A stretch of DNA of 64,000 bases from Macrostomum lignano (Eukaryota). Positions 8,776 to 51,449 of this stretch are shown piece by piece (positions within the stretch are counted from its first letter, which is position 1; every line of letters starts with the position of its first letter). Both the position numbers and the translations under genes were made by a program. Below the pieces are notes generated by a model. It searched no databases. It was not told where the DNA came from and saw only the letters and a program-made list of their open reading frames with translations. The DNA lies in NCBI GenBank assembly GCA_002269645.1, contig NIVC01001524.1:62001-126000 (forward strand), in the 5' to 3' direction.

Positions 8776-8940
8776 GAGCATAGGACTCACAACTGAAGGT
8801 CGGGGGTTGGATTCACGACCCAATCGGAAAAATCTGTGCCTTTGAGAAAGACACTTGCATTTGCTTCAGTTCACGCAGCTATAAAATGGGTGCCAGCCTT
8901 AGCTGGGGTAATTGAGGGTGCATGTGGCGACCACCTGTCG
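8776..8940 (+). mobile_element. tRNA-derived SINE with CORE-like domain (5'-truncated copy)
   Basis: Aligns by eye to 49291-49470: GGACTCAC..GAAGGTCGGGGGTT...TTGCTTCAGTTCAC.CAGCT.TAAAATGGGTGCCAGC. Confidence 0.75.
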
Positions 8941-22268: not shown

Positions 22269-24459
22269 TTTGTCGAGAAAAGCTTTAATAGCCGAATGAA
22301 AAGGGGCTTTTTTAGCTGCTTAATTTTTTTTGACTCGGGTCATTCCATAAAAGAGAAACAGTAACGTAAATTGCTCTCGCACACAGATGGAAGCCTCATG
22401 GTGGCATTTTTGCGCTTCTGGAGAAGCTTAAAAGGCTAGTAATTAACCAAGTATACTACTGAACTAATTTTTAAGTAGTTACAACCTATTAAACTCATAG
22501 AAATGTAAACTTCTAATTACAACTCATTTCATATTGGTTTTCGAATCTATTCTGGAAAAAAATATTATAACTAAGTATCGTTTGTAGATAGACTAAAAAG
22601 CGGCATCACAATTTTACTACACTTCCTACTAAACTATTTTTTTCTGAGAAATTTTCTATTTTGAAAATTTCACGTTTTTGGACGCCATACAGGCTACAGC
22701 TACAATATTGCTAGTTTACTTCTCAAACAAAACTCAGTCTCAAATAAAGTACATCGTTTTAAGCATTTGCTATATGTCAATTCTCTACCATAGAACTTAA
22801 TTGTCGATAATCGGTGCTTTTTAATTTGAAAAGAAAACTTTACTGCACACTTTTGTAAACATGGAGGTAAAAGTTATTATATCGGTAAAGATCACAAGAA
22901 AATTTCTACGCACGAATCCAAGCACCGTTTAACAATGTGCGAAGATGATCTGACTTCTGCAGGAAAATATACTTCTGTCGTAACAGATCCTCACGCAGAA
23001 CACGGCCAATAAAACTCTAAAAGTTTAATTTCGGGTTTTTTTCTCTCTCTATCTCTCTCGCGAAATTCTGCATCCATCTCAGTTCTTTCTTTTGACTTAG
23101 CCGAATACGTAATTTTAATTCCTTAACTTGTTTCATAGTGTAGTATGACTATTTTTTTAGCCATAATAACTTTGTTGATTGAGTATAGCTATTGTCCCAG
23201 GGTATACGCGTCCTTCTCTGGGGCCTTTGAGTTGGTGTTCTCACTTTCTTGCGGTAGATGTCTAGCGGTCTAAGGTTCTTACAGCTCTTAGTCTCTCCTA
23301 TCAGGCCGTCAGAGAAGACCGTATAAACTGACGGGATCTCCTAGTATCTAAGCTGAGTTTGATTCTCTCTAAGAGTTGCTCTAAGTCACAGTTAAGGCAA
23401 ATGATCGATTTGAGACTCGGGTTTCTGCCAACTGGATAATCCAGAAACTAATTCAAATGGAGCAATTCAAGATCGAAAACTGCGCAGGAAAAAAACGAAG
23501 CGCCGCTCCAGTTTGAGATGAGCGTCTATTTGTACCAATTAGCATGTTTGGCCTCCCCCGCCGCCGGTGGGGTGTCTTCGCGTTATTAGCAACGGCGGGG
23601 GGTTTTGAGCAATAACAAACTGGGACTCAGTCCCCTAATTGTACATGAATTTAGTTAGTTCTAGTAGGTTGCTAAGTGTGGAGGTTAGAGATTATTCGGG
23701 CTTTCGCAAATCTATGTGTTGAGTTGGATAAAATTTGGGATAGAAAGATTATAGAAAAAGTGCTTAGTTTTCCGTCTCTACACTCTGTCCATGAATGATT
23801 AAACAGTCCTCTGTTTCTCTCGGTTGTCAGGCAGCTTGGGGTTGATCTCGCCTTCTTGGGCAGCTTCGGGTTGGGTAGGAGTCTCTAGGTGGGCCTCACG
23901 TTTTCTCCCTCAGGGTGCGCCAGAAGATGCCGCGTGCCGCGTTGTTCTCTAAGTCAGGCTGCTGCTCAGTTTGCTTTTCCCGGCCGGTTTAGTCGCCATT
24001 GTGCCTGCGGCGGGGTGACGCTACTAACTGGAATGGAAGGAGGCTTTGTTAGATTCGGCTATTCAAATTGACTTGACAGTTGATTAATTATCTTAAAGCT
24101 GCTTCTGTTTGCTCTTCTAATAGCTATATAGGGGTTCCATTGTACTCTTCTGCCTCGCCCTTCACTGCGCCTGGGCTTTTCATAAATTTCTACCTATCTT
24201 CTAACTTGGGGTCAAAACTTCAGATTTCTAACTCTTATATGATTCCCCCTTTTTTCGAAATCCTTGTGCTAACAAGGATTTGATCAATCGACATCAGGGC
24301 TAAACGACATTGCAGGTACTGAAATTATCAAATATAAGACGTTAGAAATCTGTATACGAGTCAAGCGTCTGGAGACGTAGATAGTTAAAGGTGTAAAGAG
24401 GCGAAACCTGGGAAATTAATTGAGGGGAAACAGTTCACAGTCGTATCTATGGGCCGTAT

Positions 24460-24932
24460 TTAGTTATCTTCAAGTTGAACATTGCCGCTTCTGGCCCATA
24501 GGTACTGACGATATCCCTGCAGTGTGGGCCAGGGTCGAATGGTACTGGAGGCCGTGTAGTCGCCTCCCCTCCACGGTATCTCCGTGGGGGTCATCTCGCG
24601 TCCCCACTCGGCGTCGTTGTCAACTTGGGTGGCCACTGAATGGCCCCCATCTATGTCGCTCTCGGCGACTTGCGTCTGCGCATCCTTTTTGATGCACTTG
24701 TGGACGTGGAGATTTACGTCCACAAAGGCTTCGCCGGGTCGCCGAGCATAAGCGTCTTCGGGTGAGTAAGTGGCCATGGGAATGCTCTGAAATTAAGCAA
24801 GAGTGTGCTATTGATTTTCCGTGTGGCGGTTTTAGTGTGTATCGTCCTTGGCCTAAAGCTTCGCTTAGCGGTTCGACTGTACATTAGATCTATCCCCTGC
24901 GTACATGGGGTGGTGGGTGTGGCGGGACGCAT
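24460..24932 (-). CDS. Small ORF of unknown function in the 3' region of the retroelement (two overlapping frames, possibly one frameshifted ORF)
   Basis: ORF-track frames 24714-24932 and 24460-24777 overlap at AGAGCATTCCCATGG; no recognisable domain. Confidence 0.3.
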
Positions 24933-25093
24933 GGGGGAGGGGTTTTGAATCTGGACTTGGAGCCGCAGGGGGGGTCCTTTCTTTTCTAATCGCCGGCTCC
25001 TTCCGTTTTTAAACGCGGCGCATGTGAGAGTAGCCCCTAAAGTTATCTATTCAGCTTGTTTTCCGATTGCCCTTAACGCTAACTGATCTCATT

Positions 25094-25300
25094 ATGTCTG
25101 AGTTTGCTATGCAACGTTTGATTCGCATTATTGGCGAGTTGAAGGAGCGTCTACACGCCGTGGAAGACCGGTCTGTCGGTCTCGAGCGGCGACTGCTTTA
25201 CTTGGAATCACGATCGGTTTCGCAAGATTATGGGCTACGTACACTACAAGGTTGGCTGGGCGGAGTGGGGGCGGCGGCCTCCTCCTGTGTCTACTCCTAG
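25094..25300 (+). CDS. 68-aa antisense ORF with coiled-coil heptads
   Basis: MSEFAMQRLIRIIGELKERLHAVEDRSVGLERRLLYLESR, hydrophobic residues at heptad spacing. Confidence 0.35.
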   Translation: MSEFAMQRLIRIIGELKERLHAVEDRSVGLERRLLYLESRSVSQDYGLRTLQGWLGGVGAAASSCVYS

Positions 25301-25455
25301 TTCTATTATTCTGCTGCCTCTACCGGCGTCGTTACCAGGCCCTACCTGCCTAGTAAGCAAAATGATTGCATTGATTAGATTATTTAATAACAATATATAT
25401 TCGGGAAGTCTATTTTGTATGTCATAAACATGGTTATCAATCGGGTGTATAAGTG

Positions 25456-26616
25456 TCAGTGGGCGTCGAATATCACGACGTTGAGAATAAAGAGTAACAT
25501 AGAGAATATATCGAGAGATACAATTCGGGTGCAAAAATTATCAGGATGAGCAATATTTGTGGATACAATTTGTTTCAAGGTTAATGTGGTTAGTGTTAGA
25601 TTATATAGCGTTGTAGCTCGCTTCAAAAATTCACTTTCGTTTGGTCTAGTCTTATCCCAAGAGTAGACCGCCCTGCTGTGAGGCTGCATTGAACAAAGGA
25701 GCGTACCTGTGGGTGAAGGTGCCTCAGGGATGAGGCGGATTGGTATCCCACCAATTCGCTACAACCCTAGGGCAGTATTTCATCCCTTGTATTATCCTTT
25801 TGTTCTCTTGCAACCGGGCCTTCCTATAGCACCTCAAGGGTCCAGGTTGGGGCCTTCTGCTGCTTTCAACGCTGTGAAAAGGTGGTGCCATTGTAGGTTG
25901 GCCGGTGAATACGCAATCGTGGCTATCGATTGCCGTTCCTTGGGTTTGATTTCGATGCCGTGATAATTTAAGGTGTTGAGTAGATAAGTGATAAGCATGT
26001 CGGCTTGGAGTGATAGTGTGCTGGTCGGTCCACGAGGATGGATTAGGGTTGTCGTCACCCTGCTGTTCCATACTATGATACGGAGACAAGAGAACGCAGC
26101 TGTGTCGTCGTAGAGGAAAAAGAGCGTCGTGTTGAAGTTCAAGATAGAATAGTCAGAGAGTAACCAGCGTGGGTCTTTAGGATCTGACAGGATGCGTCGC
26201 GTAGTAAGGTGTGTGACGATGTTAGCGGGTATTAGTGGCATGTCAAGCATCTGCTGGTGAATGTCAAACAGTTTCGTTTCATCATACCGCGCCGGCTTGC
26301 TTTGAACTACCGTCTGTGCCGCCAGAGCTGTTTGGAATCGCTCTGCGAGTGTTTTAGCCTGGCGGAAATCGTTGCTCGCCGATGTTGCCGTGCTTGCTTG
26401 TCGTGGGAGCGTAGGTCGGCGTCGTTGCCATTCCTGTCGTAGCTTGTCCAGCTGTTGTTCTGTCCATGTTGACATATCTTGCTCGGGCCACTTAGGGTCA
26501 TCAGTTTCGGTGTGAGATGTTGGCTTGAAGAGAGGTCGAACTATAGGACACGGTGTCTGGGTATCTTCGTCTCCCAGGGTACAGTCATCTAGCGTATCGA
26601 GCTGTCGGTCATACAT
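25456..26616 (-). CDS. ORF3 downstream of integrase (260 aa open; may extend to 25456 through frameshifts), unknown function
   Basis: Long open frame 26616-25834 begins exactly after a splice-acceptor-like CCCTTCTAAAATTACTCATTATACCAG. Confidence 0.6.
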
Positions 26617-26776
26617 CTGGTATAATGAGTAATTTTAGAAGGGTAAAATTAAGTATTGATATTTGAGTGAATAGTTAGTGTGGATATCTATATCTAGTGT
26701 GCACAGCACGCCAACGAATGAATACGTAAATCAAATAGTCTTTATAGTCTCTGTACTCTCCCCCCATCTCCTGACA

Positions 26777-29700
26777 TCATTTGTCTAGGAGTATGGGTTT
26801 GCTCCTCAGATTGTACTTCTTTCGAACTGTGTCCGCGAGCGTCTCGTCATCAGCTTGTACGCCCACTTCCTTGCTGAACAGTTGCCGGTGCTGGCGTTGC
26901 AGTCTTCGCGGATCACTCGGGCGCAGATCGGGGAGCAGTACCTTAGGTGTTGGCGATGCTATTGGCTTTAGCCTGTCCGTGTGCACCTGAAAGGGTTCTT
27001 GAGTCGGATCGTCAATTTTCCTTATCATGACGGACGTGACACTATTTCTTTTCACAATTTCGTATGGACCCGTGAACTTGGCTTGATGCTTTCCCTGTCT
27101 CATTGGGATCTGTAGCATAACTCTGGTGCCTATGGCTAATGTAGGGGCCATTCGGTTTTTGTTAGCTCTGCTTGTGTTCTTTTCCTGGGCCACTTTGAGA
27201 TGGTGTCTGGCTATGTCTCTAGCCAGGGTGATAGCTTCTTGCATTCGGGCTGCATAGGACGGTTCATCCATGTATCTTACTAGGTTCAGCTGAGTTGTGA
27301 GCTCCGTGGGCATCAGGGGTTTCCTCGCGAAAACCAATTCGAAAGGAGAATAGGTTGAAGAGGATTGCTTGGCTGTATTGTAGGCGTAGATTGTGGCTGA
27401 TAGATATTTATGCCATTCGTTTGGATTCTCCGCAGTGTAATGTCTAAGCATGTTATGTAGGGTAGAGTGTAGTCTCTCTACGTGGTTTGCTTGCGGATGG
27501 TAGGTAGACGAGAAGATGTGCTTGACTCCCAGAATTTCTAGAGCTTCAGCTAATAGCGATGCCGTGAAATTTTTTCCATTATCGGTGGAAATTTCTATCG
27601 GGATTCCAAACATACAGAAGACTTGGAACAAAGTTTCGGCTGTGGTTTCTGCTGATAGATCTGGAATCGGGAATGCAAAGGCGAATTTTGAAAAACAACA
27701 CAGGATAGTCAGGATGTGGGTGACGGTCTCGTTCCGGATTTTCGTGGGGACCATGGGTCCTACTAGGTCTACTGATAGCTTGTCCATTGGTTTCATCGGA
27801 ATTTCAGGCATTTGGATGAGTCCCTTATGCAGTTGGCCAGATTTGTTCTTAGCGCAATCCATGCAGTCTTGACAAAAGGTTCGAATATCGGAAACCATTG
27901 AGATCCAAAAATAGTGTCGCCTAATTCTTTCTAGGGTTTTGTCAAAGCCTAAGTGCGCTGCTAGTGGTAGTGCGTGTAACGAGTGACAGATTGTTTCACG
28001 GTACTTGAATGGGAGCACTATTTGTTGGGTGTGATCTGCTGTCCTGTGAATGATTCCGTGAATGTCCGCATATTCCGATAGATGTCGCTGGATGTGTCTT
28101 TTGTATCTCATAGCTAAGCTGTCATCCATGGGCTTTTGTTCCCATAGTGCTCGAATGCCTTGGCAGAATGGGTCTTCTGCTTGAGCCTCTTTTAGGGCTT
28201 GCAGGTGTGGTATCGGGTGCTTGATCGTGACAAAGTTAATGGGTGTCTCTTGGTCCTCATATAGTCTTGAGAGTGCATCTGGGACTGCGTGTTTGGTGGA
28301 TGCGCCTGGGACGTACTCAATTTGCATTTGAAACTGTTGTAAATATAGAAGCCATCTGAGTACCTGATTGTTCCGCAGGGTTTTCCCTGTGAGTAGACCT
28401 CTGAGCGGTGCGTGATCTATTCTTAGCAATGTGGGTATTTGTGCTGCGTACAGAAATTGTTCGAATGTCTTGAATGCGTAAAAGACGGCTAAGAGTTCTA
28501 AATGAGTGACCGCATATCTTGTCTCTGCCTCTCTCAGTTGTCGACTCGTGAATGCTATTGGTTTTTCTTTTCCTGTCTCATCTTTCTGTGAGAGCATTGC
28601 GCCTATACCTTTTGTAGAAGCGTCGCTGGAGACAATGAACTGTTTATTAAAGTCAGGGTGAGTGAGCCTGAGATCTTCTGCTATCCATTTTTTCATGTCT
28701 TCAAAGGTCTGGGTCGCTTCTTCTGTCCACTTTAGTGGGGTTTTGGATGCTTGAGCCTTAGTGTTCGGTGTGCCCTTAAGCAGGTCTGTGAGTGGCTTGG
28801 CTTTCTTGGCGTAGTTAGGTACGTGTTTGCGAAAGAAATTGCAGAGTCCTAGGAAACATCTGAGCTGTGTGACATTTTGTGGCTTTGGTACCTTCTGCAC
28901 TTTGTCGACTAAAGCTCTATCAATCTGTATTCCATTTTTGTCTATCTTATGTCCTAGGAATGTGATTGTGGGCTTAGCGAATTTGCACTTTGTAATTTCA
29001 ACTTCATGCCGTACTTTCCTAGAGCTTCTAGTGTAGCTTTCAATGTCTCGAGATGGTCTTCAAATGTCTCATTGAAGACAAGTAGGTCGTCTACGTATGT
29101 TGAGACTCTGTTAATCCCTTGAAGGATTAAGCTAGCTGCTCTAGAGAGGGCTGCTGGTGAGGTTTGTAGACCCATTGGGGCTCTGGTGAAACGTAAGTTT
29201 GTCCGTCGGGCGTGGAGATGCCACAATACTTCTGACTTTCTTCTTCTAGCGCCACTTGAAAAAATGCTTGCGCCATGTCGAGAGTAGTGAAATATTCTGA
29301 TCCCTTTAATTTGGCTAAGAGGTCTGGGATTCGGGGCATGCATTGCCTTTCTGGGACCAGGATTTGGTTGAGGTCCCGAAAATCAACACAGAGACGGTAC
29401 ACTGGTTTGGCTTGAGGCGATTCCGGTTTCTTCTTGACCAATAGAATTGGTGAGATGTACGGGGTGGCTGCTTTTCTAAGAATTCCTTGCATTTCCATTC
29501 TATCGATGATTTTCTGGAGTTCTCCCGTGAGTTGGTATGGGATTGGGTACCGTTTGTTGAGCTTAATCTCCACGTTAGGCTTAATGTGAAGCTCGTGTTT
29601 CGCTACATCTGTGTATCCTATTTCCTCCTCGGATAGGCAAAAGGCTTTCTTGTTGTCCCAGAGAACCTTAATGAGCTGTTCTTTCTGGGATTCTGTCAGG

Positions 29701-32700
29701 TTGGATCCTTTGAGATCAATGGCGTTCTTGAACTCTTGTTCCGTCATTGTTGGGGTTTCTGACTGGATTTCGGCAATTTCAAAGGCTTGGATTTCTGTAT
29801 CGAAAGATCCTATGTTGGTGTCTGGATATAGTGTCATTGGGGTTGCCGATTCGTTTGAAATGATGACTTGAACCTCTCCTGACTCGTCAGGGTATACCAA
29901 TTCGGGTGTAAGGCAAATGGGTTTCTTCTCTAGGATACGTTCGTTGGGTTCGAAAAGCATAGCTGGAGGTAGTTTCTCTCTGGCGATGGCTCTTGCGGAA
30001 ATTCGAGTTGTTTCCCATGGATTGAGATTGACTGTAGAGACTAATCTGATGCAGTTAACGGGTTCTTTTGTAGTGATAGCGAGGATGTCATAGCATTTCC
30101 CGTTGAGATGGATATTCTGTTGCTGATAGTTTACGAGCACGCCCTGATTTAGTTGAGATAAGTAATCGATGCCTAATAAGACTTGATAAGTTCCTGAACT
30201 CAAATTGGGAATAACGTGGAACTCAACGTCAGCCGTGGTGTCGCCAGCTTCCACAGGGAGGTTGATCATGCCGGATTGCTGTAGTCGTGAGCCTTGTACT
30301 CCTTGCAGTTCAACTGTGGCCGGCTTGAAGGTCCTGCCGTATCGCTTTGCTGTGGCTTCGTCGATTAAGGATCGTTCGGCTCCACTGTCGATCAGGGCTC
30401 GGCAGGATCGCGTTCCCACTTGAAGTCGGGTGATTGTGTACTTCTGCTTCTGGCCGTTGTTGACCGTCGCCACCATCGGAGGTGGCCAACTGGACTCTAT
30501 CTTCGGGTAGAGTCCTGTTGATGCTGGTGCTGGTGGCGTCCACGGTGGCGGGCGCTGTGGTGCCTGTCTGGTTGTCGTGGTCTCCTGCCGCGTGTTCTGG
30601 CTTGTCGAGTTCGCTACTAGCGGTGCTCGTAACTCCTGTAGCTCCTGCTGTTCTTGCTTTGCAGCAGCTTTGCGCTGGATCGTGCGGATGCCAGGACGTT
30701 GGTACTTCTGTTTGTTGAGTCTGTGGCAGATAAGGATCATTTGGTATAAAAGATATATGTAGAACCCAATGGCAGCTACTCCTACAGCGATATCGAAAAG
30801 ATTCACTCGCATGCCTAGCCATGGTAGCCAACTTGCTGGATCAAAGGTGCCTTCCGCTATGGTGGCATCTAACGGTGGAAGATGTATAGAGTGAGAGGTT
30901 TCTGACTTGGGCAGTTTGAAAACAGTTCTTAAGAACTCTCTCTGGTCATTTAGCTGGTTGTACAAGTCGTGTACTGTGACCGGGCTTTTGAGATCGGCTA
31001 TCCTGATGTCTCCATCAGGAGTGAATATGACATGCTGAATCTCTGGGGGTTTTATGAGGGTTACCCCCACGCTTCTCTTTCTAGCTTAGTGACCGTTTGC
31101 ACAGTAAATTTCGTAAAGTTGAGGTCTGTTTTGTAGATTTCGTCTCCTTTTGGTAGGAAATACGACGTTTGGTTAGAGCAATCGTGAAATGGCGGGTGTT
31201 CCTTTTGGATTTCCAGGGTTCTAACATCTAGAAAGCCTGTGTGGTTCATGTTGAATATCGTGAAGGCAATTGGTGGTTTGGTAAAGCAGATATTCTCATC
31301 CCATCTTGGTTGGTGAAAACGAAAGTTTCTGATGGGTAGGCACTTAGAAATGACTACATGCTGTGCTAGCGTGGTGGCTTTTAATTGGCTGTCTTTGAAC
31401 AAAGTGCGCGCTGCTAGGGTGGGCTGCATAAGAAAAAGATCTTTTATGTACCGAAACAGTGTTTGCTGATGCTTGCATTGTTGTAGTATCATGTTTCGAG
31501 TAAGGTCGCCTATTCTGTCTTCCATTGTGAGTTCTAGCCCTTGTAATTTTGCTGCTAGCGTTGTGTCCGATGTGAGGTCTCGTTTTGGTCTCTTAGCGGT
31601 GCTTGAATTGTTGAATGAACCTTCAATTATGCTGCGAAACTCTTGGTCTGAGCCGTGCACCTGGACTAGTTTACCTTGTTCCGACTTGTATAGCTTTACT
31701 GTCGTGTCTCCACATTGTAAGTCCTTAGTCTGAGGTGGATGTTTGAATGTGAGGGCAAACGTAGCGTCGTTAGACATGAACCATCCAGTGTGAATTTTGC
31801 CTTGAATGAATCTGTCTGTTTGATAGGGGCAGTCTATCTCTGCGCTGGGTGTCCATACTAGGCGGTATTGTCTATCTCCTCTCACTGTGTAGCTGAGATC
31901 ATAGTATTCCATTACGGCCCAGAGTCTGTCTGGTGCCTGTCGGTTCAGTGGCGAGTCCTTCTCTGCCGTGAGGCTAGTAGTCGTGGTACAGGTTCCTGTC
32001 TTGTAGTCGCATTGGCCTATAGGGAGGGCTAACGAAGACATCTTTTTCTCTTCCACAAAGAATGAGACCTGGGTGATTAGGACTGACACTGTTTGAGTAA
32101 AGGTTTGAGCTGTGCTGGCTGTAGGTTCCAATTCCTGGGTTGTCCACTTATGAGTAGTGAATCGTTTGGCTTGTCCCATAGTCTTAGCTCCTGCTTCTAA
32201 AGTCCCATCTTGGGTTCGGGTGTTTTCTTCCCATGTTTTACAATCGTCCTTCGAAACTGAATGTTGTTGCACAGTAACAGTCATGGCTGGACTTACCATC
32301 TCCGTTGAAAGACGGTTAAGAGCGGAATCTTTTGGCTTACTCGTGAACGTGTAGGTCTCTCGGTAACATATCTTCAGTGTAGACCGGTGTGATACCTGGT
32401 TCTCCTTGTAGACTGTGATGTTGATCGGTTGCCGATGCTGTTGAATGCTACTCGGGACTGTGCATTCGATGTCCGGAGGCAATTTGAAGGCTTGAAGGCT
32501 GTTCGCTTCTGGGCAGTAGAGTGGTGTGTCCACGTAGCTGCTGTGCTGTGCCGTTGTTGCGCTGCCAGCCGCGGTGCAGAACAGTATGAGCAGTAGTATT
32601 CGCAGCAGCCATCCTGTGGTTGAGGCTGTTCGTCGGCTTTGGCTCCATGTCGGTGTAGTTCTCGGCTGTCGAATCGCTATCTGTGGCTTGGGCTCGTCAG

Positions 32701-33037
32701 TGTCAGGACATTTCTCGATCTTCTGTGGTCGCTCTTGCTTCTCCGTCCGGTCGCTCTCGGAGCGCGGTGTTAGTGTCGCCGTCGTGATGTGGCCGATCTT
32801 GACCTTGACTGCCTTGCGAAGTTGTCGCTTGGCTTGAATGATGTCGTCGCGGGTTACCACTGGTTCCGTAACTGTCTCTTCTTGCTTGGTTGACTCTGCT
32901 GGAGTGTCCGTCGGTGGCTGTTGCTGAGGCTGCTCCTTGGTTACTTCTGCGGTTTGCCGTGGTTGCGGTGTTGGTGTCACCGCTGTATTGTAGCCAATCT
33001 TAATTATTCTTTTGCTAGCCGTACTAGCTGCCACCAC
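26777..33037 (-). CDS. Env(gB-like)-PR-RT-RNaseH-integrase polyprotein, about 2087 aa after three 1-nt corrections
   Basis: Signal-like WLLRILLLILFCTAAG, Cys-rich ectodomain, furin site KRPKR (31580-31594), TM AVGVAAIGFYIYLLYQMILIC, PR ALIDSGA, RT YRLCVDFRDLN and YVDD, RH SDASTKGIGAMLSQ, IN HHCC / DLVGP / TDNG / VERLH / GPY. Confidence 0.85.
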
Positions 33038-35644
33038 AGTTGTTACAGGGGGGATTCCTGTGCACCTAGAATACGACTAAATGCCACCAAAGTTGTAATA
33101 AAGCTATTTCTCCTTAACAAATCTACTGGTTATTAATTGTCTTTCTACTGGTAGCGCATGTACTTCTATTGGTAGCGTATGTACTTCTATTGTACTTTCT
33201 GGCCTGAGCGGTCTAATAGCACTGTCTATTCTATTCCTATACTTCCCCTAAAAATATTATTCTCTCAGTCCTGGGCGTTCCCTGGATCAGAGGGTCACAG
33301 CTTATGCTCTTTCTCTGCCCTGAGGCGATCTTTCCCTCGCTCTGAGGCGGTTCTCCTGCCCTGAGGCGAATTTACTATTACTGCCCTGAGGCGATTTCTC
33401 GCTTTTTAGCGGATCTCAATACTACTCCCGATTTGGGGGTTTTACTATAGAAATGAATAAGACACTCTGAACAATTTTCTGATCAAGTTTTAGCTACTGT
33501 TAGAACACACGAAAAGCACAAGTTGATTTCTTGGCCCACTCGGGGCTTCTATTTATACTAGAGTCTCTCATCAAGTCAAACAAATAATTGTGAAAAATAT
33601 TTTTGTAAATCACAACATTTAAACAAAAACACTAGTAATTTCTTTTTAGCGCGGATTTGAACTAAAGTTTCTAAGAAAACAAGTTACTATTAGCACTATC
33701 GTACAGTATCATACTATTATTAATGCACTGTCTCACTATGGCTTTAAATGAAGAGCAGATCGCGTCATCAATTAAAAAAATTGACATAATTGACAGACTG
33801 ACTATAAAATGTATGCTATATATATATGTATATCTATATATATATCTAGGCTTGTCTCCTACTCCCAGAGTCCCAGGCCTATAAGTATCAAAGTATGAAT
33901 AGGCCTAGGCCTATGACTTTGTTCTATGCTTTAATAGAAACAGAATGCATGTCTAGACCTAGTGATGTTGTCCATTAATAATTCATTAATCCATTAATAA
34001 TTCAGAAATTCAGTTACATACATAGAATATAGATCAGTATTTTTTGTTGTCTTTTGCATTTCATTATATTATATTTATATATACCTACCTAGTTCTAGCC
34101 CCTAGGCTAGGGCTAGGCTAGTTTTAGTGACCTAGCTAGTAAGTAAATCTTAATTAAATAGGTCTACTCTGTTTTTGTTTGTTTTATATATGCTTATCTA
34201 GATTTATAAATAGGTAGACTGACATATCTGTAAAACTTGGTTTTAATCCCTCCTTGATTTTAAACACTTAGGTTAAGAGTGTAATGTCTACTTCTAGTGA
34301 ATAGTGTTATAACTAGGCTTATCATTTTAATTTTAAAATAAAATAGGCCCTACTTTACTAAAAATTGTAATTGCTATATAGGGTATAGTTTTTATGAATT
34401 AGAATTAAACCTGGATGCTTAAATATAGGCTTATGGTTGTTAGAAAGTTATCTTAAGCCTTGAACTACTATTTGAAGAATATAGATAGGCATAGTAAAAT
34501 CTAAAAGTATTTATGCTAGATAGGCCTAGATGAATGATATGAAAAATATAGAATAGAAGAAAAACATAGGTCTAAATTTAATTAGACCATAGAACTTTTA
34601 CAAAAGTTATTACTCTGACTGTTTAAAAACATAACAACGATATTTGTGTTATATTTTAGTTATTTTGAATTAAATATTAATGTTTATAATCCTAGAACTT
34701 TATTACAATTTTCCCTTTCATTCATGCTACTTTACATGGTCAATATGGCATCGCTACTTATTGGTTCCAAGCTTGTCTTTATACCAAGTGGCAAAGTGGC
34801 AAGCATCCTATGATTGCTAAAAGAAAAAATGAAGCCAGCCTAAAGTAAAAATGCAACATGATAAAGAGCCCTAAAGTAGGCCCTATTACTAAAAGCTCTT
34901 ATAGACCTACTTTTATTGATAAGAAAGTAAGCTTAAGCTTTCTAGCAATATTGACTTTAAAATCTCAGTACTGGACTTTTTCAGTTTCAATTATTAGCAA
35001 ACCAATTTAATTGTACATTGTAGTAAAAGATGCACCTAGTTGTTTTCAGATGTTTCTGCTTCTATTTTTTGCTAAAAGTATTGTTCACCCTAATTTCATT
35101 TTTCCATTGTACCATTAGTATTTTTCTATTGAATGTGTGCTTAACTTTTGTTTTAAAGTTGACTTATTTTTTGCTTGTGCTATTTCCCTTGTGCATACAA
35201 GTTTTATTTCATGAGCATATATGTGTATTTGTTTACATTTTCACAAATAAATATGTCTACTTTATTTTGATTGTTCAATGACATTTGATTTTGTTCTGGC
35301 AGCTTACTAGCACAATACTAAAAGTGCAGAATCAAATAAGAAAGTCCTGTCATAACTCGTGTTCTTTATTGGAATTAGATTAGTGCATCGGGGTTTTATA
35401 AATGGATTACTAAACAGATCTGGGAAGATTTGATAAGACGGACAATGCATTCAATTGGTAAAGCTTAATACATCTTACAAGATCTGCCCAGATCTCCTAA
35501 GATCTGCTCGTGCAGACCGTGCAAGATCTTCCTGCAGATCTTGTAAGTTCTGCCTATATATTTAAATAGTGCAGATCTGTTACGTTCTTGCAAGAACGTA
35601 GCGAGAAGCTCCAGACAGATCTGCTAAGAAATGGCATGACGATT

Positions 35645-35986
35645 TCATCTACAGTAGCCGGGCCTACATGGCCATGGAAATCCACCTAAGACACGCTTTT
35701 CCCGGCCCGCGGATGCAGCACGCCGTTTGGTGGTTGAGCTCGGCATAAGAGGTTCCTCGATTGAGTCGTCGACAGCTCTGCTCGACGGATCCACAACGTC
35801 GTCATCCTCTGGAAGTGGAAATCAGGGATCAGAAGTCTTTGTAAGAGAGCACTCTAAGGCCTATCAGATCGGCATAACGCGCGTGATTTCAAACCTACCG
35901 ATCTCAGATTCGGCTTGTACAATGGCAGTTGAACAGAAGAGCAGCGCAAGAAGCGCAAGCTGCATCAGCGAGCTTCGGTTTGACAT
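35645..35986 (-). CDS. 83-aa secreted prepropeptide; coding exons 35986-35899 and 35808-35645
   Basis: MSNRSSLMQLALLALLFCSTAIVQA (signal) ESEIEDDDVVDPSSRAVDDSIEEPLMPSSTTKRRAASAGREKR VLGGFPWPCRPGYCR*; 90-bp GT-AG phase-1 intron; AATAAA at 35365-35370. Confidence 0.75.
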
Positions 35987-36278
35987 CACAAGGCGGTAGT
36001 TCGATGCAAGTTTGCACACAGTTTTGTACCTGTGAGTTGAGGCGATAAAGTGACACGAATTTACATGCCAATGGTGCGATATCGGTAAAGAATAATGTCA
36101 CTGAAAAGCGATTTCAATGCTACCTGGTTATTCAAAAGCAAACGCTCAAGTCCTCAAGACACGTAATATGTTTAATTCTCTTCAAAAGAATTAAAGTTTT
36201 AAACAAATAAAATGCGAGCTAGCTATTTAAAAGTCTGACGTGAGAAAGCTAAACGCTGCAGGGGCAAAAGCAGGCGCC

Positions 36279-36285
36279 TTTTATA
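36279..36285 (-). promoter_or_regulatory. TATA box (TATAAAA) of the prepropeptide gene
   Basis: Lies upstream of a putative untranslated exon ending at donor 36124 and an acceptor before 36029. Confidence 0.5.
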
Positions 36286-36864
36286 GCTGAATTTTGGGCT
36301 AGTAAGCAAAAAATGCATTGCTTTTAGCTTTTGCGATCCCTTAGCCCTTTTTGAGTGTGTTAGCGCAGCGTCTTTCTCCAAAAAAAATTGAAATAGCTAC
36401 CTGCTCAAAATTTAATATCAGTGTACCATTTTTCAAATAATGAGAAATTTCTCGGACTACTTTTTACTTCTTACTTTTTGTTTGGGCAAGTTTTCAAATT
36501 TATATGATTTTACCTTATTATTCCATTTAGAAAAAGGTATTCTCAGTGCATTAAAAAACCCTTGAAACATTTCGAATTTCGAAAACGAATTCCGATCTCT
36601 GACTCTTGTGGTTGAACCATAAATATTATAGAAAAAAATATTGAATTCATAAGTTTTTTTAACTTGAAACGAATTGCACAGGTTTGATTTTTATTTTCTG
36701 CAAAATATCAGTCGAAATTAAAAATGTAATTTTGCCTTTACGATCCACGGTGCTCATAAATACTTGAACTGCATTTTAGATAAACTTCTTTTCACCCTCG
36801 ACAGACACCCTCTGAAACACCTGTACACATTAAAGAAGCAATTGAGGCACCTTCCGTGTCCAGA

Positions 36865-37438
36865 TGCACAAGTGACTCATGGTTGGTGATCGGTGAGGTG
36901 CACAAGTGACTCATGGTTGGTGATCGGTGAGGTGCACAAGTGACTCATGGCTGGTGATCAGTGAGGGGCACAAGTGACTCATGGTTTGTGATCAGTGAGG
37001 GGCACAAGTGACTCATGGTTGCATGGTGATCGGTGAGGTGCACAAGTGACTCATGGTTGGTGATCGGTGAGGTGCACAAGTGACTCATGGTTGGTGATCG
37101 GTGAGGTGCACAAGTGACTCATGGCTGGTGATCAGTGAGGGGCACAAGTGACTCATGGTTTGTGATCAGTGAGGGGCACAAGTGACTCATGGTTGGTGAT
37201 CGGTGAGGTGCACAAGTGACGCATGGTTAGTGATCGGTGAGAGACACTTGTGACTCATGGTTGGTGATCGGTGAGGTGCACAAGTGACTCATGGCTGGTG
37301 ATCAGTGAGGGGCACAAGTGACTCATGGTTTGTGATCAGTGAGGGGCACAAGTGACTCATGGTTGGTGATCGGTGAGGTGCACAAGTGACGCATGGTTAG
37401 TGATCGGTGAGAGACACTTGTGACTCATGGTTGGTGAT
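36865..37438. repeat. 34-bp tandem minisatellite, about 17 copies, most containing TGACTCA
   Basis: CACAAGTGACTCATGGTTGGTGATCGGTGAGGTG recurs at 36867, 36901, 36935 and onward. Confidence 0.95.
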
Positions 37439-38344
37439 TATACCGGGATTTTTTATGATGTTAAAAACACCGGTTATTTTCTGCCTTTAGACAGTGATCG
37501 GTGAGAAAGCTAGCTTTCATGGCGATGCTTTTCCATTCGCTTCCATTCACAAGCAACAAAATTCAGAACTGGCTGAGATGCTGCTACTGTTCTCTTACTC
37601 CCTCACGGCTCGCTGTAGCCGATGTCTGTGGCACTCACCCATTCTTACAAAAGAGATTTCAGCCAGTTCTGAAGTTCTGTTTCAGTAGCTCATGACTCTT
37701 TTTTGGGTAACCGTCAGATCTGGGGCCACTGCATGCAATGTTTTAGAGTCGTTAAAAGAAAACTAAAAAGGAATTTCCGGCTGCAGCTTTGGCACTTTAT
37801 GCTAAACCCTCCACTCCGTAATAAAAAAATAGTCTGTTCTAAGCATGAATAATGAATTATGACTAAAAATTAATTTTATTTATCTATTTTATGAGCTGGA
37901 TGCAAGCATGTAGTAGAGTTTTACTTCTATATACTAAAAATTTTCAAACGGTCGGGTTGTGTCCAATCTGACGTTGGGCATCGCCAAGTACGTTCTCGAG
38001 CATATTTTCTAGATCCTCAATCTGTCGATTCAATCGTCCAGTTTGTTGACGATCAGATCGACCATCTTTTGAAAGTATTGCTGCAATTGGTCAAGCGGAT
38101 TCTGCAGGCAGGTGTTAATATCGGTTGCTGCGGCTTTGAGGCTTTGAGGTTTCAGCAGCCATGGTTAACCGCAGCAGTTGTGCGAGCTACTGCTGAGTTT
38201 ACATCTTTACTAATCGCATTTCTATTATAGAGAGAGTCTTGCGCACTATCAGCGTACGATTGAAAGTATGCGTTTTATTCCAGATTGAGAGTACATGCAT
38301 CAATTCAAGAGTTGAAATTACTGTAAAATACTTTAAGCTAAACC

Positions 38345-38359
38345 AGTAATAATAATAAT

Positions 38360-38408
<49 letters not shown>

Positions 38409-38449
38409 TTAACAATAATAATAATAATAATAACAATAATAATAATAAT

Positions 38450-38492
<43 letters not shown>

Positions 38493-38590
38493 TTAATAAT
38501 AATAATAACAATAATAATAATAATATTAATAATAATAATAATAATGATAATAATAATAATAATAATAATATTAACAATAATAATAATAAT
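38345..38590. repeat. (AAT)n microsatellite
   Basis: Read directly. Confidence 0.95.
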
Positions 38591-39069
38591 GTTGTCTAAC
38601 TGAAACAACTAATTATAATTAGAAACAACAAATCTCTTGCGGACCTTTACAAGCAAGCTACTCTAACAACCCATACACTGGTATATGCAGATTGTGATTC
38701 TTGTACTGCTAGTTGGCTTTCGAGTTTTTCGTCCTACTCAAACACAACCTACAAGTAATTCTCCGGGAAAACAAGCTACATGTACTAGCTGACAGTAAAG
38801 TGTAGTTGATTATAAAGCACTATTGCTGCTTCCAATTGCTGATTGGCGACTAGAGTGGAGTCGGGACAGCCCATGCATCCTCAACCTGTGATTTTTGCTG
38901 TCCGAATTTCATATACACACCTGATTGTCACGCATCAGAGAGAGACAATAAAGCTGAAGTTCTTTGACTTAGATAGCAGTTGCTCCGTATGTATTCCTCC
39001 GTAGTATGTCCGTAACTGTATGGAACTGGCATTACACACGTGTAGCTATATGATACGGCCGTTTTTTTC

Positions 39070-43090: not shown

Positions 43091-43738
43091 ATGAGCGGCG
43101 ATGAAAATGAGGATACGAGATTGATGGAATTATTCACCCAGCAATTCGAACGTTTTGAAGACAGTGGATTGAAAAATGAATACCGTTTTGCGACTGTTAA
43201 ATATCCATCGATTCAAGGTCGCATAAAACTCGTTTTGTTCATAGTCAACAAGGTGGCCGGCCAAGATTCCCGGGATCAGTTTGCTGTCAGCTGTCACCAT
43301 TTAGAACTGGTGAAGTTTCTTGTGAAGACAGTCGCTGACCAAAGTGAGAGAGATCAGTGCTGCAAGGAAGCTGCGGAATCTGCTGCATCGAGTGGTTATT
43401 TAGAAGTGGTGAAGTATCTTGTGGGGACAGTCGCTGACCAAAGTGTGAGAGATCAGTGCTGCAAGGAAGCTGCGGAATCTGCTGCATCGAGTGGTTATTT
43501 AGAAGTGGTGACGTATCTTGTGGGGACAGTCGCTGACCAAAATCTGAGAGATCAGTGCTGCAAGGAAGCTGCGGAATCTGCTGCATCGAGTGGTTGTTTA
43601 GAAGTGGTGACGTATCTTGTGGGGACAGTCGCTGACCAAAGTGAGAGAGATGAGTGCTGCCGAGAGGCTGCTTTTTTTGCAAGCCAGCACACGGAAGTTT
43701 TGCGGTTACTACTGAAGACGAAAGCCAGAAATTTATGA
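43091..43738 (+). CDS. 215-aa protein of 33-aa Cys-Cys ankyrin-like repeats; paralog or fragment of the 1802 gene family
   Basis: 99-bp tandem unit encoding VGTVADQSVRDQCCKEAAESAASSGYLEVVTYL; same pattern as RDKCCLTAVEHAAFNGHSRVVDYL in the 1802 ORF; ends HTEVLRLL. Confidence 0.6.
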   Translation: MSGDENEDTRLMELFTQQFERFEDSGLKNEYRFATVKYPSIQGRIKLVLFIVNKVAGQDSRDQFAVSCHHLELVKFLVKTVADQSERDQCCKEAAESAASSGYLEVVKYLVGTVADQSVRDQCCKEAAESAASSGYLEVVTYLVGTVADQNLRDQCCKEAAESAASSGCLEVVTYLVGTVADQSERDECCREAAFFASQHTEVLRLLLKTKARNL

Positions 43739-48173: not shown

Positions 48174-49631
48174 GTCCTACTTCCTGGACGAGTCGAAGGT
48201 GAGTAAAACGGATTAGGATTCGTGAACTCTGGACTGCTTATCATTAGAGTAAAATGATTTCTTCAAATTGTTAAATTTTACCACAGGAACAACACGTCGC
48301 CGCGGGGCTTTTGAACCACTTTTACCTGAGGTATGTGATTTTTTGTCTTGGAATGTGTCTTGTGTCTCCACTTTTTAGTCGATAGTGACTTTTATTAGTA
48401 GAACATGTACTCACTTCATAGTTACGTATTGTTGAGTCGAATTAAACAAGTCAAGTTTCCACCTATGGCAATCATGAGCTGTTGCATTCTTTAAGTGTGA
48501 AGACGGCCATAATGCCCCCCCCTTCGTGAAACTCGACACCACGCAAAGGAATAAGGACTAATTCATAAAATTGATGCTTAGTAAGTTGATGAAGAATCCA
48601 CTATGAGGCAGATTTGAAGGAAGGCCGTAGCTGTGCCAATAGTGATTCGTGATTTTGAGCAGGGAACTTCAGGTTGAGCAACAGATGGATGTGAGCGAAA
48701 TAAGCCAAGACGCGTACAGATGACGATGACAAAAAGAAGAGGGCTTGCAGATTTTTCTAGTTTGACAAAGGAGACTTGTGCGATCCGTCCTCCTCCTGAA
48801 GGTTGAGCGTCGAAAAAAGAATGAGACAGAGAGAAAGGTTCCAATTTCTTTTGTACCTCCCCTCATCGGGCGGGGTCCCTCTGCTCAATGCATCCAAAGT
48901 CTCGCCCCACTTCAGTCTTCTCCGTTCCTCTTGTCTTCTTCCCCACTTGGCTTAAACTCTTTCACCGGTTCCCAACCCTGTCGCGCACTTCACCCAGGCG
49001 CCCTACCGGCTTTCCTGCCCTTGTCTTGCCCTGCCGTGCGCTGTCATTTTCATAAATGTGAGGCCTATTGATTTGCAAATGATGTGTTGTGTATCCATTC
49101 CCACCCACCTTAGGTCGTAGCAATGATGACTTCTCAATGAGCCCACCTGTGCAGACTGCTCTTGAGTAACTTTCTCTTCTCTTATTTTCTCAGTCTGTTT
49201 CATGTACTGTCTTAGAATTTAACACATTTAAATGATTTAACTGGTAGCTCTATTAAAACTACAGTACCATGTACCATTAAAAGTACCATTGTACCAGTGG
49301 TTAGAGCGTCGGACTCACGACCTGAAAGGTCGGGGGTTCGTTTCTTGACCAGCTCAAAACAATTTGTGTCCTTGAGCAAGATACTTAACTCTGCATTGCT
49401 TCAGTTCACCCAGCTGTAAAATGGGTGCCAGCATAACTGGGGAAATTGAGGTGTGTGTGGCGACCCCCCAGCCCATTGGGACAGGTGTAATCAATAATTA
49501 GTAGTATATTATTTTTATTTTAAATCATGAAAAGTAACGTCCGTATAATCTGTAAATCATATTTTTTAGATTCCAAGAGACTGGACGAGGATAAGTTTTT
49601 GGACCTAGGTCACGGAAGAAACTGGAGAAGC
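48174..49631 (+). other. Putative non-coding 5' exons of the cholinergic locus (48174-48198, 48287-48330, 49570-49631; acceptor before 49715)
   Basis: Short segments bounded by pyrimidine-AG and GTGAGT / GTATGT / GTAAGA sites upstream of the VAChT ATG. Confidence 0.4.
49291..49470 (+). mobile_element. tRNA-derived SINE with CORE-like domain
   Basis: A-box-like CAGTGGTTAGAGCG, B-box-like GGTTCGTTTC, then TGTCCTTGAGCAAGATACTTAAC...CAGCTGTAAAATGGG resembling the MIR/CORE segment. Confidence 0.8.
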
Positions 49632-49742: not shown

Positions 49743-51449
49743 ATGTTGAGTTATCTTCAGTCGCTTATCGAAGACCCAAGGTCGCAGAGAAAGTTCGTTC
49801 TGGTCATTGTTTGTATCGCTCTGCTCCTAGACAACATGCTGTATATGGTGATCGTGCCCATCATTCCGCACTACCTGACCAACGTTACTAAGGAGTTGAG
49901 CGACCGTTACAGTCAGGTGTACATCTATAGCCAAAATGTCACTACTATGGTGAATGACACCGTAAGGCATCACATTAACAAAACCAGCATGACCAGATGG
50001 GGCATGCGGCGTTCCGAGTCAGCCGAGAGACAAATTGGCATGCTATTCGCTAGCAAAGCTTTTGTGCAGCTTCTCATTAACCCCATCAGCGGCACCATTA
50101 TTGACAAAGTCGGCTACGATCGACCCATGATGTTTGGACTGACGGTAATCTGCCTGTCAACAGTGGTGTTTGCCTTCGGGCACTCCTACGGGGTGATGAT
50201 GCTTGCTCGGAGTCTGCAAGGCGTTGGATCCGCGTTTGCCGATACCTCGGGACTGGCCATGATTGCCGATCGTTTCACCGAAGAATCCGAACGGACGAAA
50301 GCGCTCGGTATTGCACTGGCTTTCATCTCATTCGGATCTCTGGTTGCGCCGCCGTTTGGAGGTATCTTGTACGACCACTTCGGCAAGGTCCTGCCCTTCC
50401 TAGTGCTGTCCAGTATCGCTCTGATCGACGGCTGTCTCATGCTCATAGTGATGAAGCCAGTAAGAATTGAACGTCGTACCCAGAAGGCTACAGGAGACCT
50501 GCCGAAAGGTACGCCAATTTGGCGCCTTCTTAGAGACCCGTACATTGCCACCTGCGCTGGAGCCTTGGCCATGTCGAATGTCTCTCTGGCTTTTCTAGAG
50601 CCAACCATTTCAATGTGGATGGAAGAAAAACTGAAGACAACCAACACCGAGGAGGGCATGGTTTGGCTGCCATCATTTTTTCCACACGTGCTGGGCGTTT
50701 ACAGCACCGTTTATCTGGCTCGACGTTTTCCGAAATATCAATGGCTCATGGCTGCCGTTGGTTTGTCGCTTGAAGGCTTCTCCTGCTTGTGCGTACCATT
50801 CTGCAACAGCTTCGTGACGCTGATGATACCAATCTGTCTGCTGTGCTACGGCATCGCTCTGGTGGACACCGCCCTCCTGCCGACCCTCGCATTCGTCGTC
50901 GACCATCACTACTCCTCGGTGTACGGATCTGTGTACGCCATCGCCGATATTTCTTACAGCATGGCCTACGCGTTCGGGCCTGTGGTGGCGGCCGGTTTAG
51001 TTAAATCAATCAGCTTCACCGGAATGAATGTCGTCATCTTTCTGACTAACGTTCTCTACGCTCCGATTCTGCTGGTACTACGCAATGTCTACAAATACGA
51101 AGGTGAATTTATCGAGGGAGAAGGCGAGAACGTCGGCGGAGGCGGCGGCGGTGGCGAGGGCGTTTCGATTCAGAATGCGCCGAAGCCGCACATGCGGACC
51201 TACATGCTAAACGGTTCGGATTCAGTCGGGGCAAAACCACTGGACAGCAAAGACGACCCGTATGCTTCCATGCAGCCTCACGACGGCGGAAGCAACGTGC
51301 CGGCTTTTCAGACGGACTTCTCGAATGCATTCGGTCCTAACAGCGCAGGCAACGACTTTGCTCCGCCACGACCGCCGCCCCCGCCGCCCCCGCCGACCTA
51401 TACTCAGGCGCAGCAGCCGGGTTGGAAGAATCAGGGGCCGTTGGACTGA
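49743..51449 (+). CDS. VAChT: Vesicular acetylcholine transporter (SLC18A3 / unc-17 ortholog), intronless, 568 aa
   Basis: LVIVCIALLLDNMLYMVIVPIIP, GMLFASKAFVQL, ARSLQGVGSAFADTSGLAMIADRF, LEPTI, SVYGSVYAIADISYS; adjacent to ChAT. Confidence 0.97.
   Translation: MLSYLQSLIEDPRSQRKFVLVIVCIALLLDNMLYMVIVPIIPHYLTNVTKELSDRYSQVYIYSQNVTTMVNDTVRHHINKTSMTRWGMRRSESAERQIGMLFASKAFVQLLINPISGTIIDKVGYDRPMMFGLTVICLSTVVFAFGHSYGVMMLARSLQGVGSAFADTSGLAMIADRFTEESERTKALGIALAFISFGSLVAPPFGGILYDHFGKVLPFLVLSSIALIDGCLMLIVMKPVRIERRTQKATGDLPKGTPIWRLLRDPYIATCAGALAMSNVSLAFLEPTISMWMEEKLKTTNTEEGMVWLPSFFPHVLGVYSTVYLARRFPKYQWLMAAVGLSLEGFSCLCVPFCNSFVTLMIPICLLCYGIALVDTALLPTLAFVVDHHYSSVYGSVYAIADISYSMAYAFGPVVAAGLVKSISFTGMNVVIFLTNVLYAPILLVLRNVYKYEGEFIEGEGENVGGGGGGGEGVSIQNAPKPHMRTYMLNGSDSVGAKPLDSKDDPYASMQPHDGGSNVPAFQTDFSNAFGPNSAGNDFAPPRPPPPPPPPTYTQAQQPGWKNQGPLD

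Follow-up and report, generated by a model that had tools for sequence, protein, structure and literature searches.

When does a gene with the layout of a prohormone encode a new signalling peptide, and when is it what is left of an older one? The question is raised by a small gene on the minus strand of Macrostomum lignano contig NIVC01001524.1 (assembly GCA_002269645.1), within a stretch of 64,000 nucleotides that was analysed as a whole and is referred to here as the window. Positions 35200-36450 were read on that strand and two coding pieces were translated, giving a spliced product of 83 amino acids, MSNRSSLMQLALLALLFCSTAIVQAESEIEDDDVVDPSSRAVDDSIEEPLMPSSTTKRRAASAGREKRVLGGFPWPCRPGYCR. From its N-terminus, this product consists of a signal-like start MSNRSSLMQLALLALLFCSTAIVQA, a 31-residue spacer, the basic triplet KRR, the segment AASAGRE, a second basic site KR and a C-terminal peptide with two cysteines, VLGGFPWPCRPGYCR. 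A first-pass annotation had seen in it a hidden gene for a novel bioactive cyclic peptide. Comparison with a second gene of the same species suggests another history. The peptide gene is very probably a lineage-specific truncated paralogue of the Mlig026077 FRW-amide precursor gene. Judged on homology, the locus adds a species-restricted member to the secretory peptide precursors, with truncation of a paralogue as its origin, and does not so far amount to a new bioactive peptide.

Homology to an FRW-amide precursor gene

The predicted product is 62% identical to the NCBI protein BOX15_Mlig026077g1. The gene for this protein, annotated as BOX15_Mlig026077g1/g2 (PAA47094.1 and PAA62704.1; UniProt A0A267ENZ8), lies on two contigs of assembly GCA_002269645.1, labelled here L001 and L002, which hold identical copies of it. 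When the genomic DNA is spliced at the homologous 110-nt intron, the paralogue encodes a protein of 149 amino acids with eight repeat units. The first unit is GTTFRWGKR and the next seven are of the form (Q/P)SGVFRWGKR; a short acidic tail follows. Since each unit ends in an amide-donor glycine and a dibasic cleavage site, the paralogue reads as a standard multi-copy amidated neuropeptide precursor that should release eight FRW-amide peptides. Apparently, this parent gene is itself an undescribed, species-restricted precursor with eight copies. The NCBI model of the paralogue, at 129 amino acids and six FRWGKR units, is two units short of the genome (L001 and L002, 5001-5560).

The alignment of the two genes begins some 10 nt ahead of the TATA box (TTCAGC/TTCAAC) and reaches the first KR site, and blastn joins window positions 36291-35713 to L001 4685-5297 as one block. 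Within the aligned region, identity to the paralogue is unevenly distributed. Coding exon 1 is 95.5% identical at the DNA level (84 of 88 nt), followed by the 45 nt before the ATG (87%), the spacer of the pro-region (80%), the 5' untranslated region (UTR) exon (76%) and the two introns (73-74%, with the coding-region intron at 74%). At the protein level, 28 of the 29 residues of exon 1 are common to both genes. The coding-region intron is 110 nt long in the paralogue and 90 nt long here, and it interrupts both genes at the same position and in the same phase. Past the first KR site, MAFFT recognises no similarity to the paralogue.

Common to the two genes are the promoter next to the TATA box, the leader and the signal peptide, the position and phase of the intron, the acidic spacer and the first KR site, together with colinear flanks. 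In its homologous signal peptide, pro-region and exon-intron structure, the peptide gene agrees with the Mlig026077 family. In contrast, the paralogue carries eight amidatable FRW units, whereas the peptide gene has two degenerate ones, neither of which contains FRW-Gly, and it ends in a non-amidated two-cysteine peptide followed by an unrelated 3' UTR. Intact xSGVFRW-Gly-Lys-Arg units, the remaining mark of the family, were found in no frame of the window.

Because the flanks are colinear and the introns have been retained, the copy arose by duplication of the locus and not as a retrocopy. As read from the aligned blocks, this colinearity shows that a segmental duplication copied the whole FRW-amide locus. 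The same blocks show that the array on the window side was cut down to two degenerate units, with the loss of units 3-8, the old stop codon and the beginning of the former 3' UTR.

Origin of the two-cysteine tail

A codon test was carried out on the tail, for which the register was fixed by the flanking homology and one codon gap was allowed, with shuffled tails optimised in the same manner. Compared codon by codon with repeat units 1-2 of the paralogue, the tail is identical at 34 of 60 nt. Codon shuffles of the tail gave 20.2±3.2 identities, and none of 20,000 reached 34. In the resulting alignment, RAAS-A-GRE-KR, VLGGFPWPCR and P of the window stand opposite GTTF---RWG-KR, QSGVFRWGKR and P of the paralogue. 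By this test, the tail is units 1 and 2 of the FRW-amide array. Less came of other comparisons: when the tail DNA was aligned locally with the repeats under strict scoring, the result was not significant, a protein shuffle test against the repeats was marginal (P≈0.05), and a free-end global alignment of the tail was uninformative.

The two units have changed in different ways. Degenerate unit 1, at 35693-35722 on the minus strand, reads RAASAGRE-KR where the paralogue has GTTFRWG-KR in the in-register codon alignment, and its FRW is gone. Degenerate unit 2 has kept its Gly, Phe and Trp, and its GKR has become PCR. With that change the amide donor and the dibasic site were lost and the first cysteine was gained. 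Since the GKR signal was converted to PCR, five more residues are added to the peptide before a new stop is reached, Pro79 and then Gly-Tyr-Cys-Arg. The translated C-terminal peptide and its stop codon together occupy 35645-35692 on the minus strand. The novel stand-alone peptide of the first-pass annotation is instead a degenerate remnant of FRW-amide units 1-2 in which GKR has turned into PCR.

The last four codons and the stop are less easily placed, and they may represent either a decayed unit 3 or foreign DNA. With one codon deleted, the last codons match unit 3 (PSGVFRW) at 7 of 15 nt by hand count, including TGA against TGG, a match that neither supports nor excludes descent from that unit.

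Rearrangement of the locus

Searching the window by blastn with the paralogue loci gave colinear blocks, which follow the same order and orientation as in L001 and L002. The upstream block, at 38741-38913 on the minus strand, corresponds to L001 4253-4429 with 78% identity. It is separated from the gene by 256 nt in L001 and by 2.45 kb in the window. On the other side, the ancestral 3' flank has been displaced to 22800-23033 (minus strand), where blastn and alignment match it to DNA beginning about 25 nt past the paralogue stop; it now lies 12.6 kb downstream of the gene. About 245 nt of the paralogue have no counterpart; they comprise units 3-8 with the acidic C-terminus and the stop, and reach into the beginning of the 3' UTR. 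Where they would be expected, the window has a 12.6-kb segment with the present stop codon, a 3' UTR rich in palindromes, AT-rich DNA and a retroelement. A search for leftover FRWGKR units in all frames of the window, including the DNA beside the displaced 3' flank, found none.

The open reading frames (ORFs) of the retroelement extend over 24460-33037 on the minus strand and match Pfam families for a fusion glycoprotein, aspartyl protease, reverse transcriptase (RT), RNase H and integrase. The first of them, at 33037-31061, matches class-III viral fusion glycoproteins (Monjiviricetes_fusion, 1.2e-7; herpes gB, 3e-3) and sits 5' of the protease-RT (31070-29127) and RNase H-integrase (28900-26777) frames, with the RT going on in another frame at 29343-28954. 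No relatives of the glycoprotein ORF were found at E<=1e-20. Neither a pair of long terminal repeats (LTRs) nor a second copy of 33000-36000 was found in the window, and no target-site duplication was found. Since LTRs and other copies of 33000-36000 are missing from the window, the junction of the extra DNA could not be placed. More than one order of insertion and deletion events may account for the 12.6-kb segment.

Downstream of the stop, the 3' UTR contains a palindrome-rich, strongly folding block at 35406-35641 (minus strand), with eight AGATCT sites and nested inverted repeats. These eight sites, out of 23 in the entire window, are packed into 207 nt (Poisson P about 2e-14). A perfect 20-nt palindrome is found at 35581-35600. 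The predicted fold energy of the block is -81.9 kcal/mol (z = -5.9), and an inner 84-nt hairpin at 35409-35492 has z = -4.2. The block has no homology to the paralogue, and it could be a foldback element resembling a miniature inverted-repeat transposable element (MITE), a hairpin-RNA locus or a regulatory cluster. An Rfam match of the inner hairpin to ciona-mir-92 was below threshold (26 versus 56 bits) and was taken as chance.

Together, the block and the retroelement raise the possibility that the end of the gene is chimeric. On this account, which we consider possible but rather unlikely, GYCR-stop, the palindrome-rich 3' UTR and the AATAAA signal would all come from an inserted foldback or MITE-like element or from the edge of the retroelement segment. 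In-register homology is indeed traceable only as far as Pro79, at about 35660, and neither the 15 nt that follow nor any part of the 3' UTR shows similarity to the units, the C-terminus or the 3' UTR of the paralogue. The foldback-like block, which has terminal inverted repeats, starts 23 nt past the stop, and 12.6 kb of extra DNA are found where about 245 nt of the paralogue lack a counterpart. However, the block has no second copy in the window or in L001 and L002, so that its mobile nature is unproven, and it comes with neither an LTR pair nor a target-site duplication. The partial match to unit 3 is neutral between an insertion and descent from the array. Were the end chimeric, the second cysteine, and hence the loop, would be a by-product of insertion; this doubtful corollary is compatible with either functional status of the gene.

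Two repeats lie upstream of the gene. A 34-nt tandem repeat in four copies is located at 36828-36997, 0.5 kb from the gene, and a simple trinucleotide-type repeat at 38333-38608 falls within the 2.2 kb between the gene and the upstream syntenic block.

Structure of the gene

All elements of the gene that the first-pass annotation had listed are present in the DNA, namely the TATA box, the putative UTR exon, the predicted signal peptide, the acidic region, the KRR and KR sites, the two-cysteine 15-mer and the AATAAA signal. All are on the minus strand. The TATA box TATAAAAG was read directly at 36285-36278, and the putative transcription start was placed by its spacing from this box. A putative non-coding first exon follows at 36124-36255; it ends in CAG ahead of GTAGCA, contains no ATG and is 76% identical to the paralogue. 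Next to it is a putative 5' UTR intron of 94 nt (36030-36123, GT..AG), the GT and AG of which are kept in the paralogue. Its acceptor AG at 36031-36030 is also used by the UniProt model A0A1I8HF14, although it could alternatively serve as a trans-splice acceptor. The spliced leader has no upstream ATG, and the unspliced leader has one, inside the 94-nt interval.

The coding region begins in an exon at 35899-36029 that comprises 43 nt of leader, codons 1-29 and one further base, as supported by translation and identity to the paralogue. Translation from the ATG at 35986 gives a first coding piece of 88 nt (35986-35899), which encodes MSNRSSLMQLALLALLFCSTAIVQAESEI plus 1 nt. It is followed by a phase-1 intron of 90 nt at 35809-35898, with the boundaries GTAGGT...CTTCCAG, whose retention would bring in-frame stops. 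The coding part of exon 2 runs from 35808 to 35645 and closes with a TGA at 35647-35645. Within the 345 nt 3' of the stop (35644-35300), the sole AATAAA or ATTAAA is the AATAAA at 35370-35365.

That the gene is split by a 90-bp intron, as proposed at first pass, is upheld by the GT..AG junction read in the DNA and by the same junction in UniProt A0A1I8J6K9. Because this junction was modelled independently and the intron of the paralogue agrees in position and phase, the gene model exceeds what could be expected by chance.

Predicted precursor and its processing

By reading, the predicted signal peptide extends from M1 to A25 (35986-35912). Arg4 makes its n-region basic, the hydrophobic core is 14 residues long, and V-Q-A precedes the expected cut between VQA and ESE. 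The spacer, residues 26-56, starts at 35911 in the preceding exon; with 11 D/E and one K/R, its isoelectric point is 4.05. In exon 2, the acidic pro-region (E30 to T56-K57-R58, where the first dibasic site lies) covers 35723-35808. The basic sites KRR (residues 57-59) and KR (67-68) are both found at the positions of KR sites in the paralogue, and basic convertase sites flank the peptide in the manner of neuropeptide precursors. After removal of the signal peptide, the only cysteines left are Cys77 (codon 35668-35666) and Cys82 (codon 35653-35651), spaced as Cys-x4-Cys. The order of signal, acidic spacer, dibasic site and C-terminal peptide noted at first pass is a real precursor layout, backed by homologues.

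What the DNA shows are the processing motifs, the structure of the gene and its homology, and from these we infer each biochemical step of processing. The signal peptide would guide co-translational entry into the secretory pathway and be cut off after VQA25. A PC2-type convertase would then cut after KR68 and also at KRR57-59, and a carboxypeptidase would trim Arg83. The machinery for convertase cutting exists in M. lignano, where a PC2 homologue is pan-neuronal (PMC12435804). Cys77 and Cys82 would close a six-residue ring, Cys-Arg-Pro-Gly-Tyr-Cys, and ring closure is favoured by the turn-forming Pro-Gly and by the lack of any other cysteine. A disulfide-looped product is plausible. The predicted product is the non-amidated peptide VLGGFPWPCRPGYC, with a monoisotopic mass of 1548.70 Da in the oxidised form. 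Calculated masses are 1550.72 Da when it is reduced, 1704.80 Da when Arg83 is retained and 1582.69 Da for a Phe70 variant; for peptides of the paralogue they are 877.46 Da (QSGVFRW-amide), 846.45 Da (PSGVFRW-amide) and 765.39 Da (GTTFRW-amide). If it signals at all, it would do so by a different recognition mode than the parent peptides, because their RW-amide end has been lost.

Public models and searches for relatives

The gene had been called hidden, and it is indeed missing from the six-frame ORF list; public annotation nevertheless contains it. UniProt A0A1I8J6K9, an uncharacterized M. lignano protein of 83 amino acids, is 99% identical to the product, uses the same junction and differs by one change, Leu70Phe. 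It represents a second copy or an allele in which the 83-codon frame and both cysteines have been kept. A second entry, A0A1I8HF14 (1150 amino acids), clusters with A0A1I8J6K9 and includes the exons of the peptide gene with Leu70. Its segments span window positions 41815 to 19966, and nine of them match at 97-100%. The tenth, over the peptide gene, matches at 74% only because the alignment crosses the intron. From these segment matches and the presence of the exons with Leu70, the window can be taken as the locus behind A0A1I8HF14.

The latter entry, named Peptidase A2 domain-containing protein, is a chimeric model: an ORF lying upstream (41818-41306) is joined in it to the peptide gene and to parts of the retroelement, whose ORFs it enters by a splice that leaves the peptide after KRVL. 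On this composition it is not to be treated as one protein.

Relatives were sought by an exhaustive HMMER search and two word-indexed searches, and the matches were limited to two M. lignano clusters. These homologues answer the concern, voiced at first pass, that the gene might prove to have none. The same searches revealed no wider family, either for the peptide gene or for its FRW-amide parent. A Pfam scan of the product returned zero families, and a sequence search of the PDB with the tail gave nothing meaningful. A literature search with the peptide strings and the gene identifier produced no match. The parent gene may be listed by McVeigh et al. 2009 or Koziol et al. 2016; Collins et al. 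2010 contains neither FRW nor RWamide.

Maintained gene or decaying remnant

Whether the truncated gene still functions can be approached through its divergence from the paralogue. In the signal-peptide exon, nonsynonymous divergence (dN) is 0.016-0.018 and synonymous divergence (dS) is 0.11-0.15. The exon has four differences in 88 nt as compared with 49 in 185 intron positions (Fisher P=6e-6), and just one of the four changes an amino acid among the 29 codons. Drift since the duplication would predict changes in about 30% of the 29 residues (P≈4e-4). From these values the signal peptide looks to be under selection. The pro-region is intermediate, with dN 0.19 and dS 0.27. Both indels in exon 2 are whole codons, which those of the introns are not, and no damage is seen in the start codon, in either splice site or in either dibasic site. 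On such grounds, we give an even chance to the proposition that the truncated paralogue is still a working secretory gene that would yield a looped, non-amidated 14-mer.

Several observations weigh against a working gene. All FRW-Gly motifs are absent from it, and both of its flanks have been disrupted, by 2.2 kb of extra DNA upstream and by 12.6 kb downstream. In the tail, dN is 0.75 and dS is 0.68, with no sign of purifying selection. The tail is also more divergent than the introns (26/60 vs 49/185, P=0.016), and decay, or a comparison of non-orthologous units, fits this divergence as well as adaptation does. Even the near identity of exon 1 admits another explanation, as a short gene-conversion tract from the intact paralogue could cover this exon and the preceding 45 nt; the argument for selection would be void if the identity arose in that way. 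The dS of the exon is lower than the intron distance, a difference that is not significant. Neither the exact 83-amino-acid product nor a 76-amino-acid product has an entry in a collection of 15 billion proteins that includes the NCBI proteins of M. lignano. Homologues beyond M. lignano are missing from 1.84 billion representatives and from 5.8 billion clusters. Nor was the mature peptide seen to be conserved in other species or between paralogues, given a tail dN/dS of about 1 and a family found in M. lignano only.

These points can be read together as the signature of a decaying relic, and this reading deserves serious consideration even if we hold it at somewhat under an even chance. The gene would then be a redundant FRW-amide duplicate that has become a pseudogene or a functionless transcribed ORF, and the cysteine pair would be an accident of drift. 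The relic would explain why not one intact FRWG unit is left, why units 3-8 and the stop are missing with the old 3' flank 12.6 kb away behind a retroelement, and why the promoter-distal block has shifted by 2.2 kb. A tail with dN/dS near 1 that has diverged beyond the introns, the absence of the gene from the NCBI protein set that holds its paralogue, and the restriction of the family to one species all point the same way. The M. lignano genome, moreover, has many redundant duplicates, such as the identical copies of the paralogue on L001 and L002. It is harder for a relic to account for a signal-peptide exon with hardly any change at nonsynonymous sites when the introns differ by 26%. Had the gene lost its function at the time its tail started to change, decay of the signal peptide over the same span would be expected. 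Also against a relic are the intact reading frame, start, splice sites and dibasic sites, the restriction of coding indels to whole codons and the presence of the 83-codon ORF in two copies.

A stronger proposal is that an amidated multi-copy gene became a gene for a single looped peptide and that selection kept the new peptide for a new target, be it a receptor, a microbe or a mating partner. We regard this as improbable, though not to be dismissed. In such a conversion, point mutation would have turned GKR into PCR, the array would have been truncated, and a new stop and 3' UTR would have been acquired, perhaps from mobile DNA. As for the bioactive cyclic peptide suggested at first pass, the two-cysteine peptide does follow a KR site; the same peptide is also the remnant of an array, with a tail that lacks purifying selection, and its bioactivity stands as a possibility and no longer as a finding.

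The outcome matters on either side. Transgenesis, RNA interference and in situ methods are established in M. lignano. If a selected new peptide proved true, the locus would have caught in the act the birth of a new type of peptide signal from an old precursor. If the peptide is made and used, the locus would offer a route, dated and resolved to single bases, by which a linear amidated repeat peptide became cyclic and lost its amide, in which the signal peptide and promoter-proximal DNA were kept and the tail and 3' end were replaced. If the gene is a relic, a textbook prohormone layout can be the remainder of a broken paralogue, and comparison with paralogues would be needed before such layouts are counted as new bioactive peptides.

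Comparison with known peptide systems

In precursors of the urotensin II and somatostatin type, one cyclic peptide follows a dibasic site at the very C-terminus, and the urotensin II ring has six residues (C-x4-C). On paper, the layout of the peptide gene is similar to the urotensin II, somatostatin and allatostatin-C type, with one inferred disulfide after KR68 and the same C-terminal position and ring size. Flatworm luqin precursors also have a C-terminal cysteine pair (PMC7041311). Even so, it is highly improbable that the gene is a diverged member of one of these disulfide-loop families. There is no sequence relationship to the urotensin II and somatostatin type, which has an F-W-K-Y/T ring core where the peptide gene has R-P-G-Y; the product lacks any FWK(Y/T) core and has neither a Pfam family nor an HMMER relative to link it to such peptides. 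As the tail descends from a linear amidated FRW-amide unit, its loop is secondary. Luqin precursors are defined by a (W)RPxGRF/RY/RW-amide peptide and a C-terminal Cys-x10-Cys (PMC7041311). Membership in this type was rejected, since the gene encodes no such amidated peptide and has Cys-x4-Cys in place of Cys-x10-Cys.

Another likeness is found in the pattern of divergence. Frog-skin preprodermaseptins ('Rana box' loops) and the conotoxin superfamilies combine a conserved signal and pro-region with a hypervariable mature peptide, and these families have many members with demonstrated diversifying selection. The gradient of conservation from signal peptide through pro-region to mature peptide is alike between the peptide gene and its paralogue, which have no sequence in common with these families. 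It differs in that only two gene types from one species are available here, and the fast tail may be decay.

As for the parent gene, the FRWamide precursor of Urechis unicinctus (GenBank MT162138) has a signal peptide and seven FRW-amide copies (PMC7737342). It is expressed in larval apical-organ neurons and has been called Urechis-specific (PMC7737342). Its C-terminal motif and architecture are like those of the M. lignano parent, whereas the peptide gene itself is without the motif. The HMMER and word-indexed searches from the flatworm proteins did not retrieve it.

Other features of the window

Beyond the ancestral 3' flank, long arrays with an 8-nt period extend from 21298 to about 22000. 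A dispersed repeat, about 190 nt long and probably a small mobile element, occurs in the window at 8758-8935 and 49289-49479 and once in each paralogue locus (L001 1037-1233), with 77-86% identity among its copies. On the plus strand, Pfam identifies the ORFs at 1802-4645 and 43091-43738 as ankyrin-repeat proteins, the ORF at 5477-7138 as having a Mab-21-like domain and the ORF at 49743-51449 as a major-facilitator transporter.

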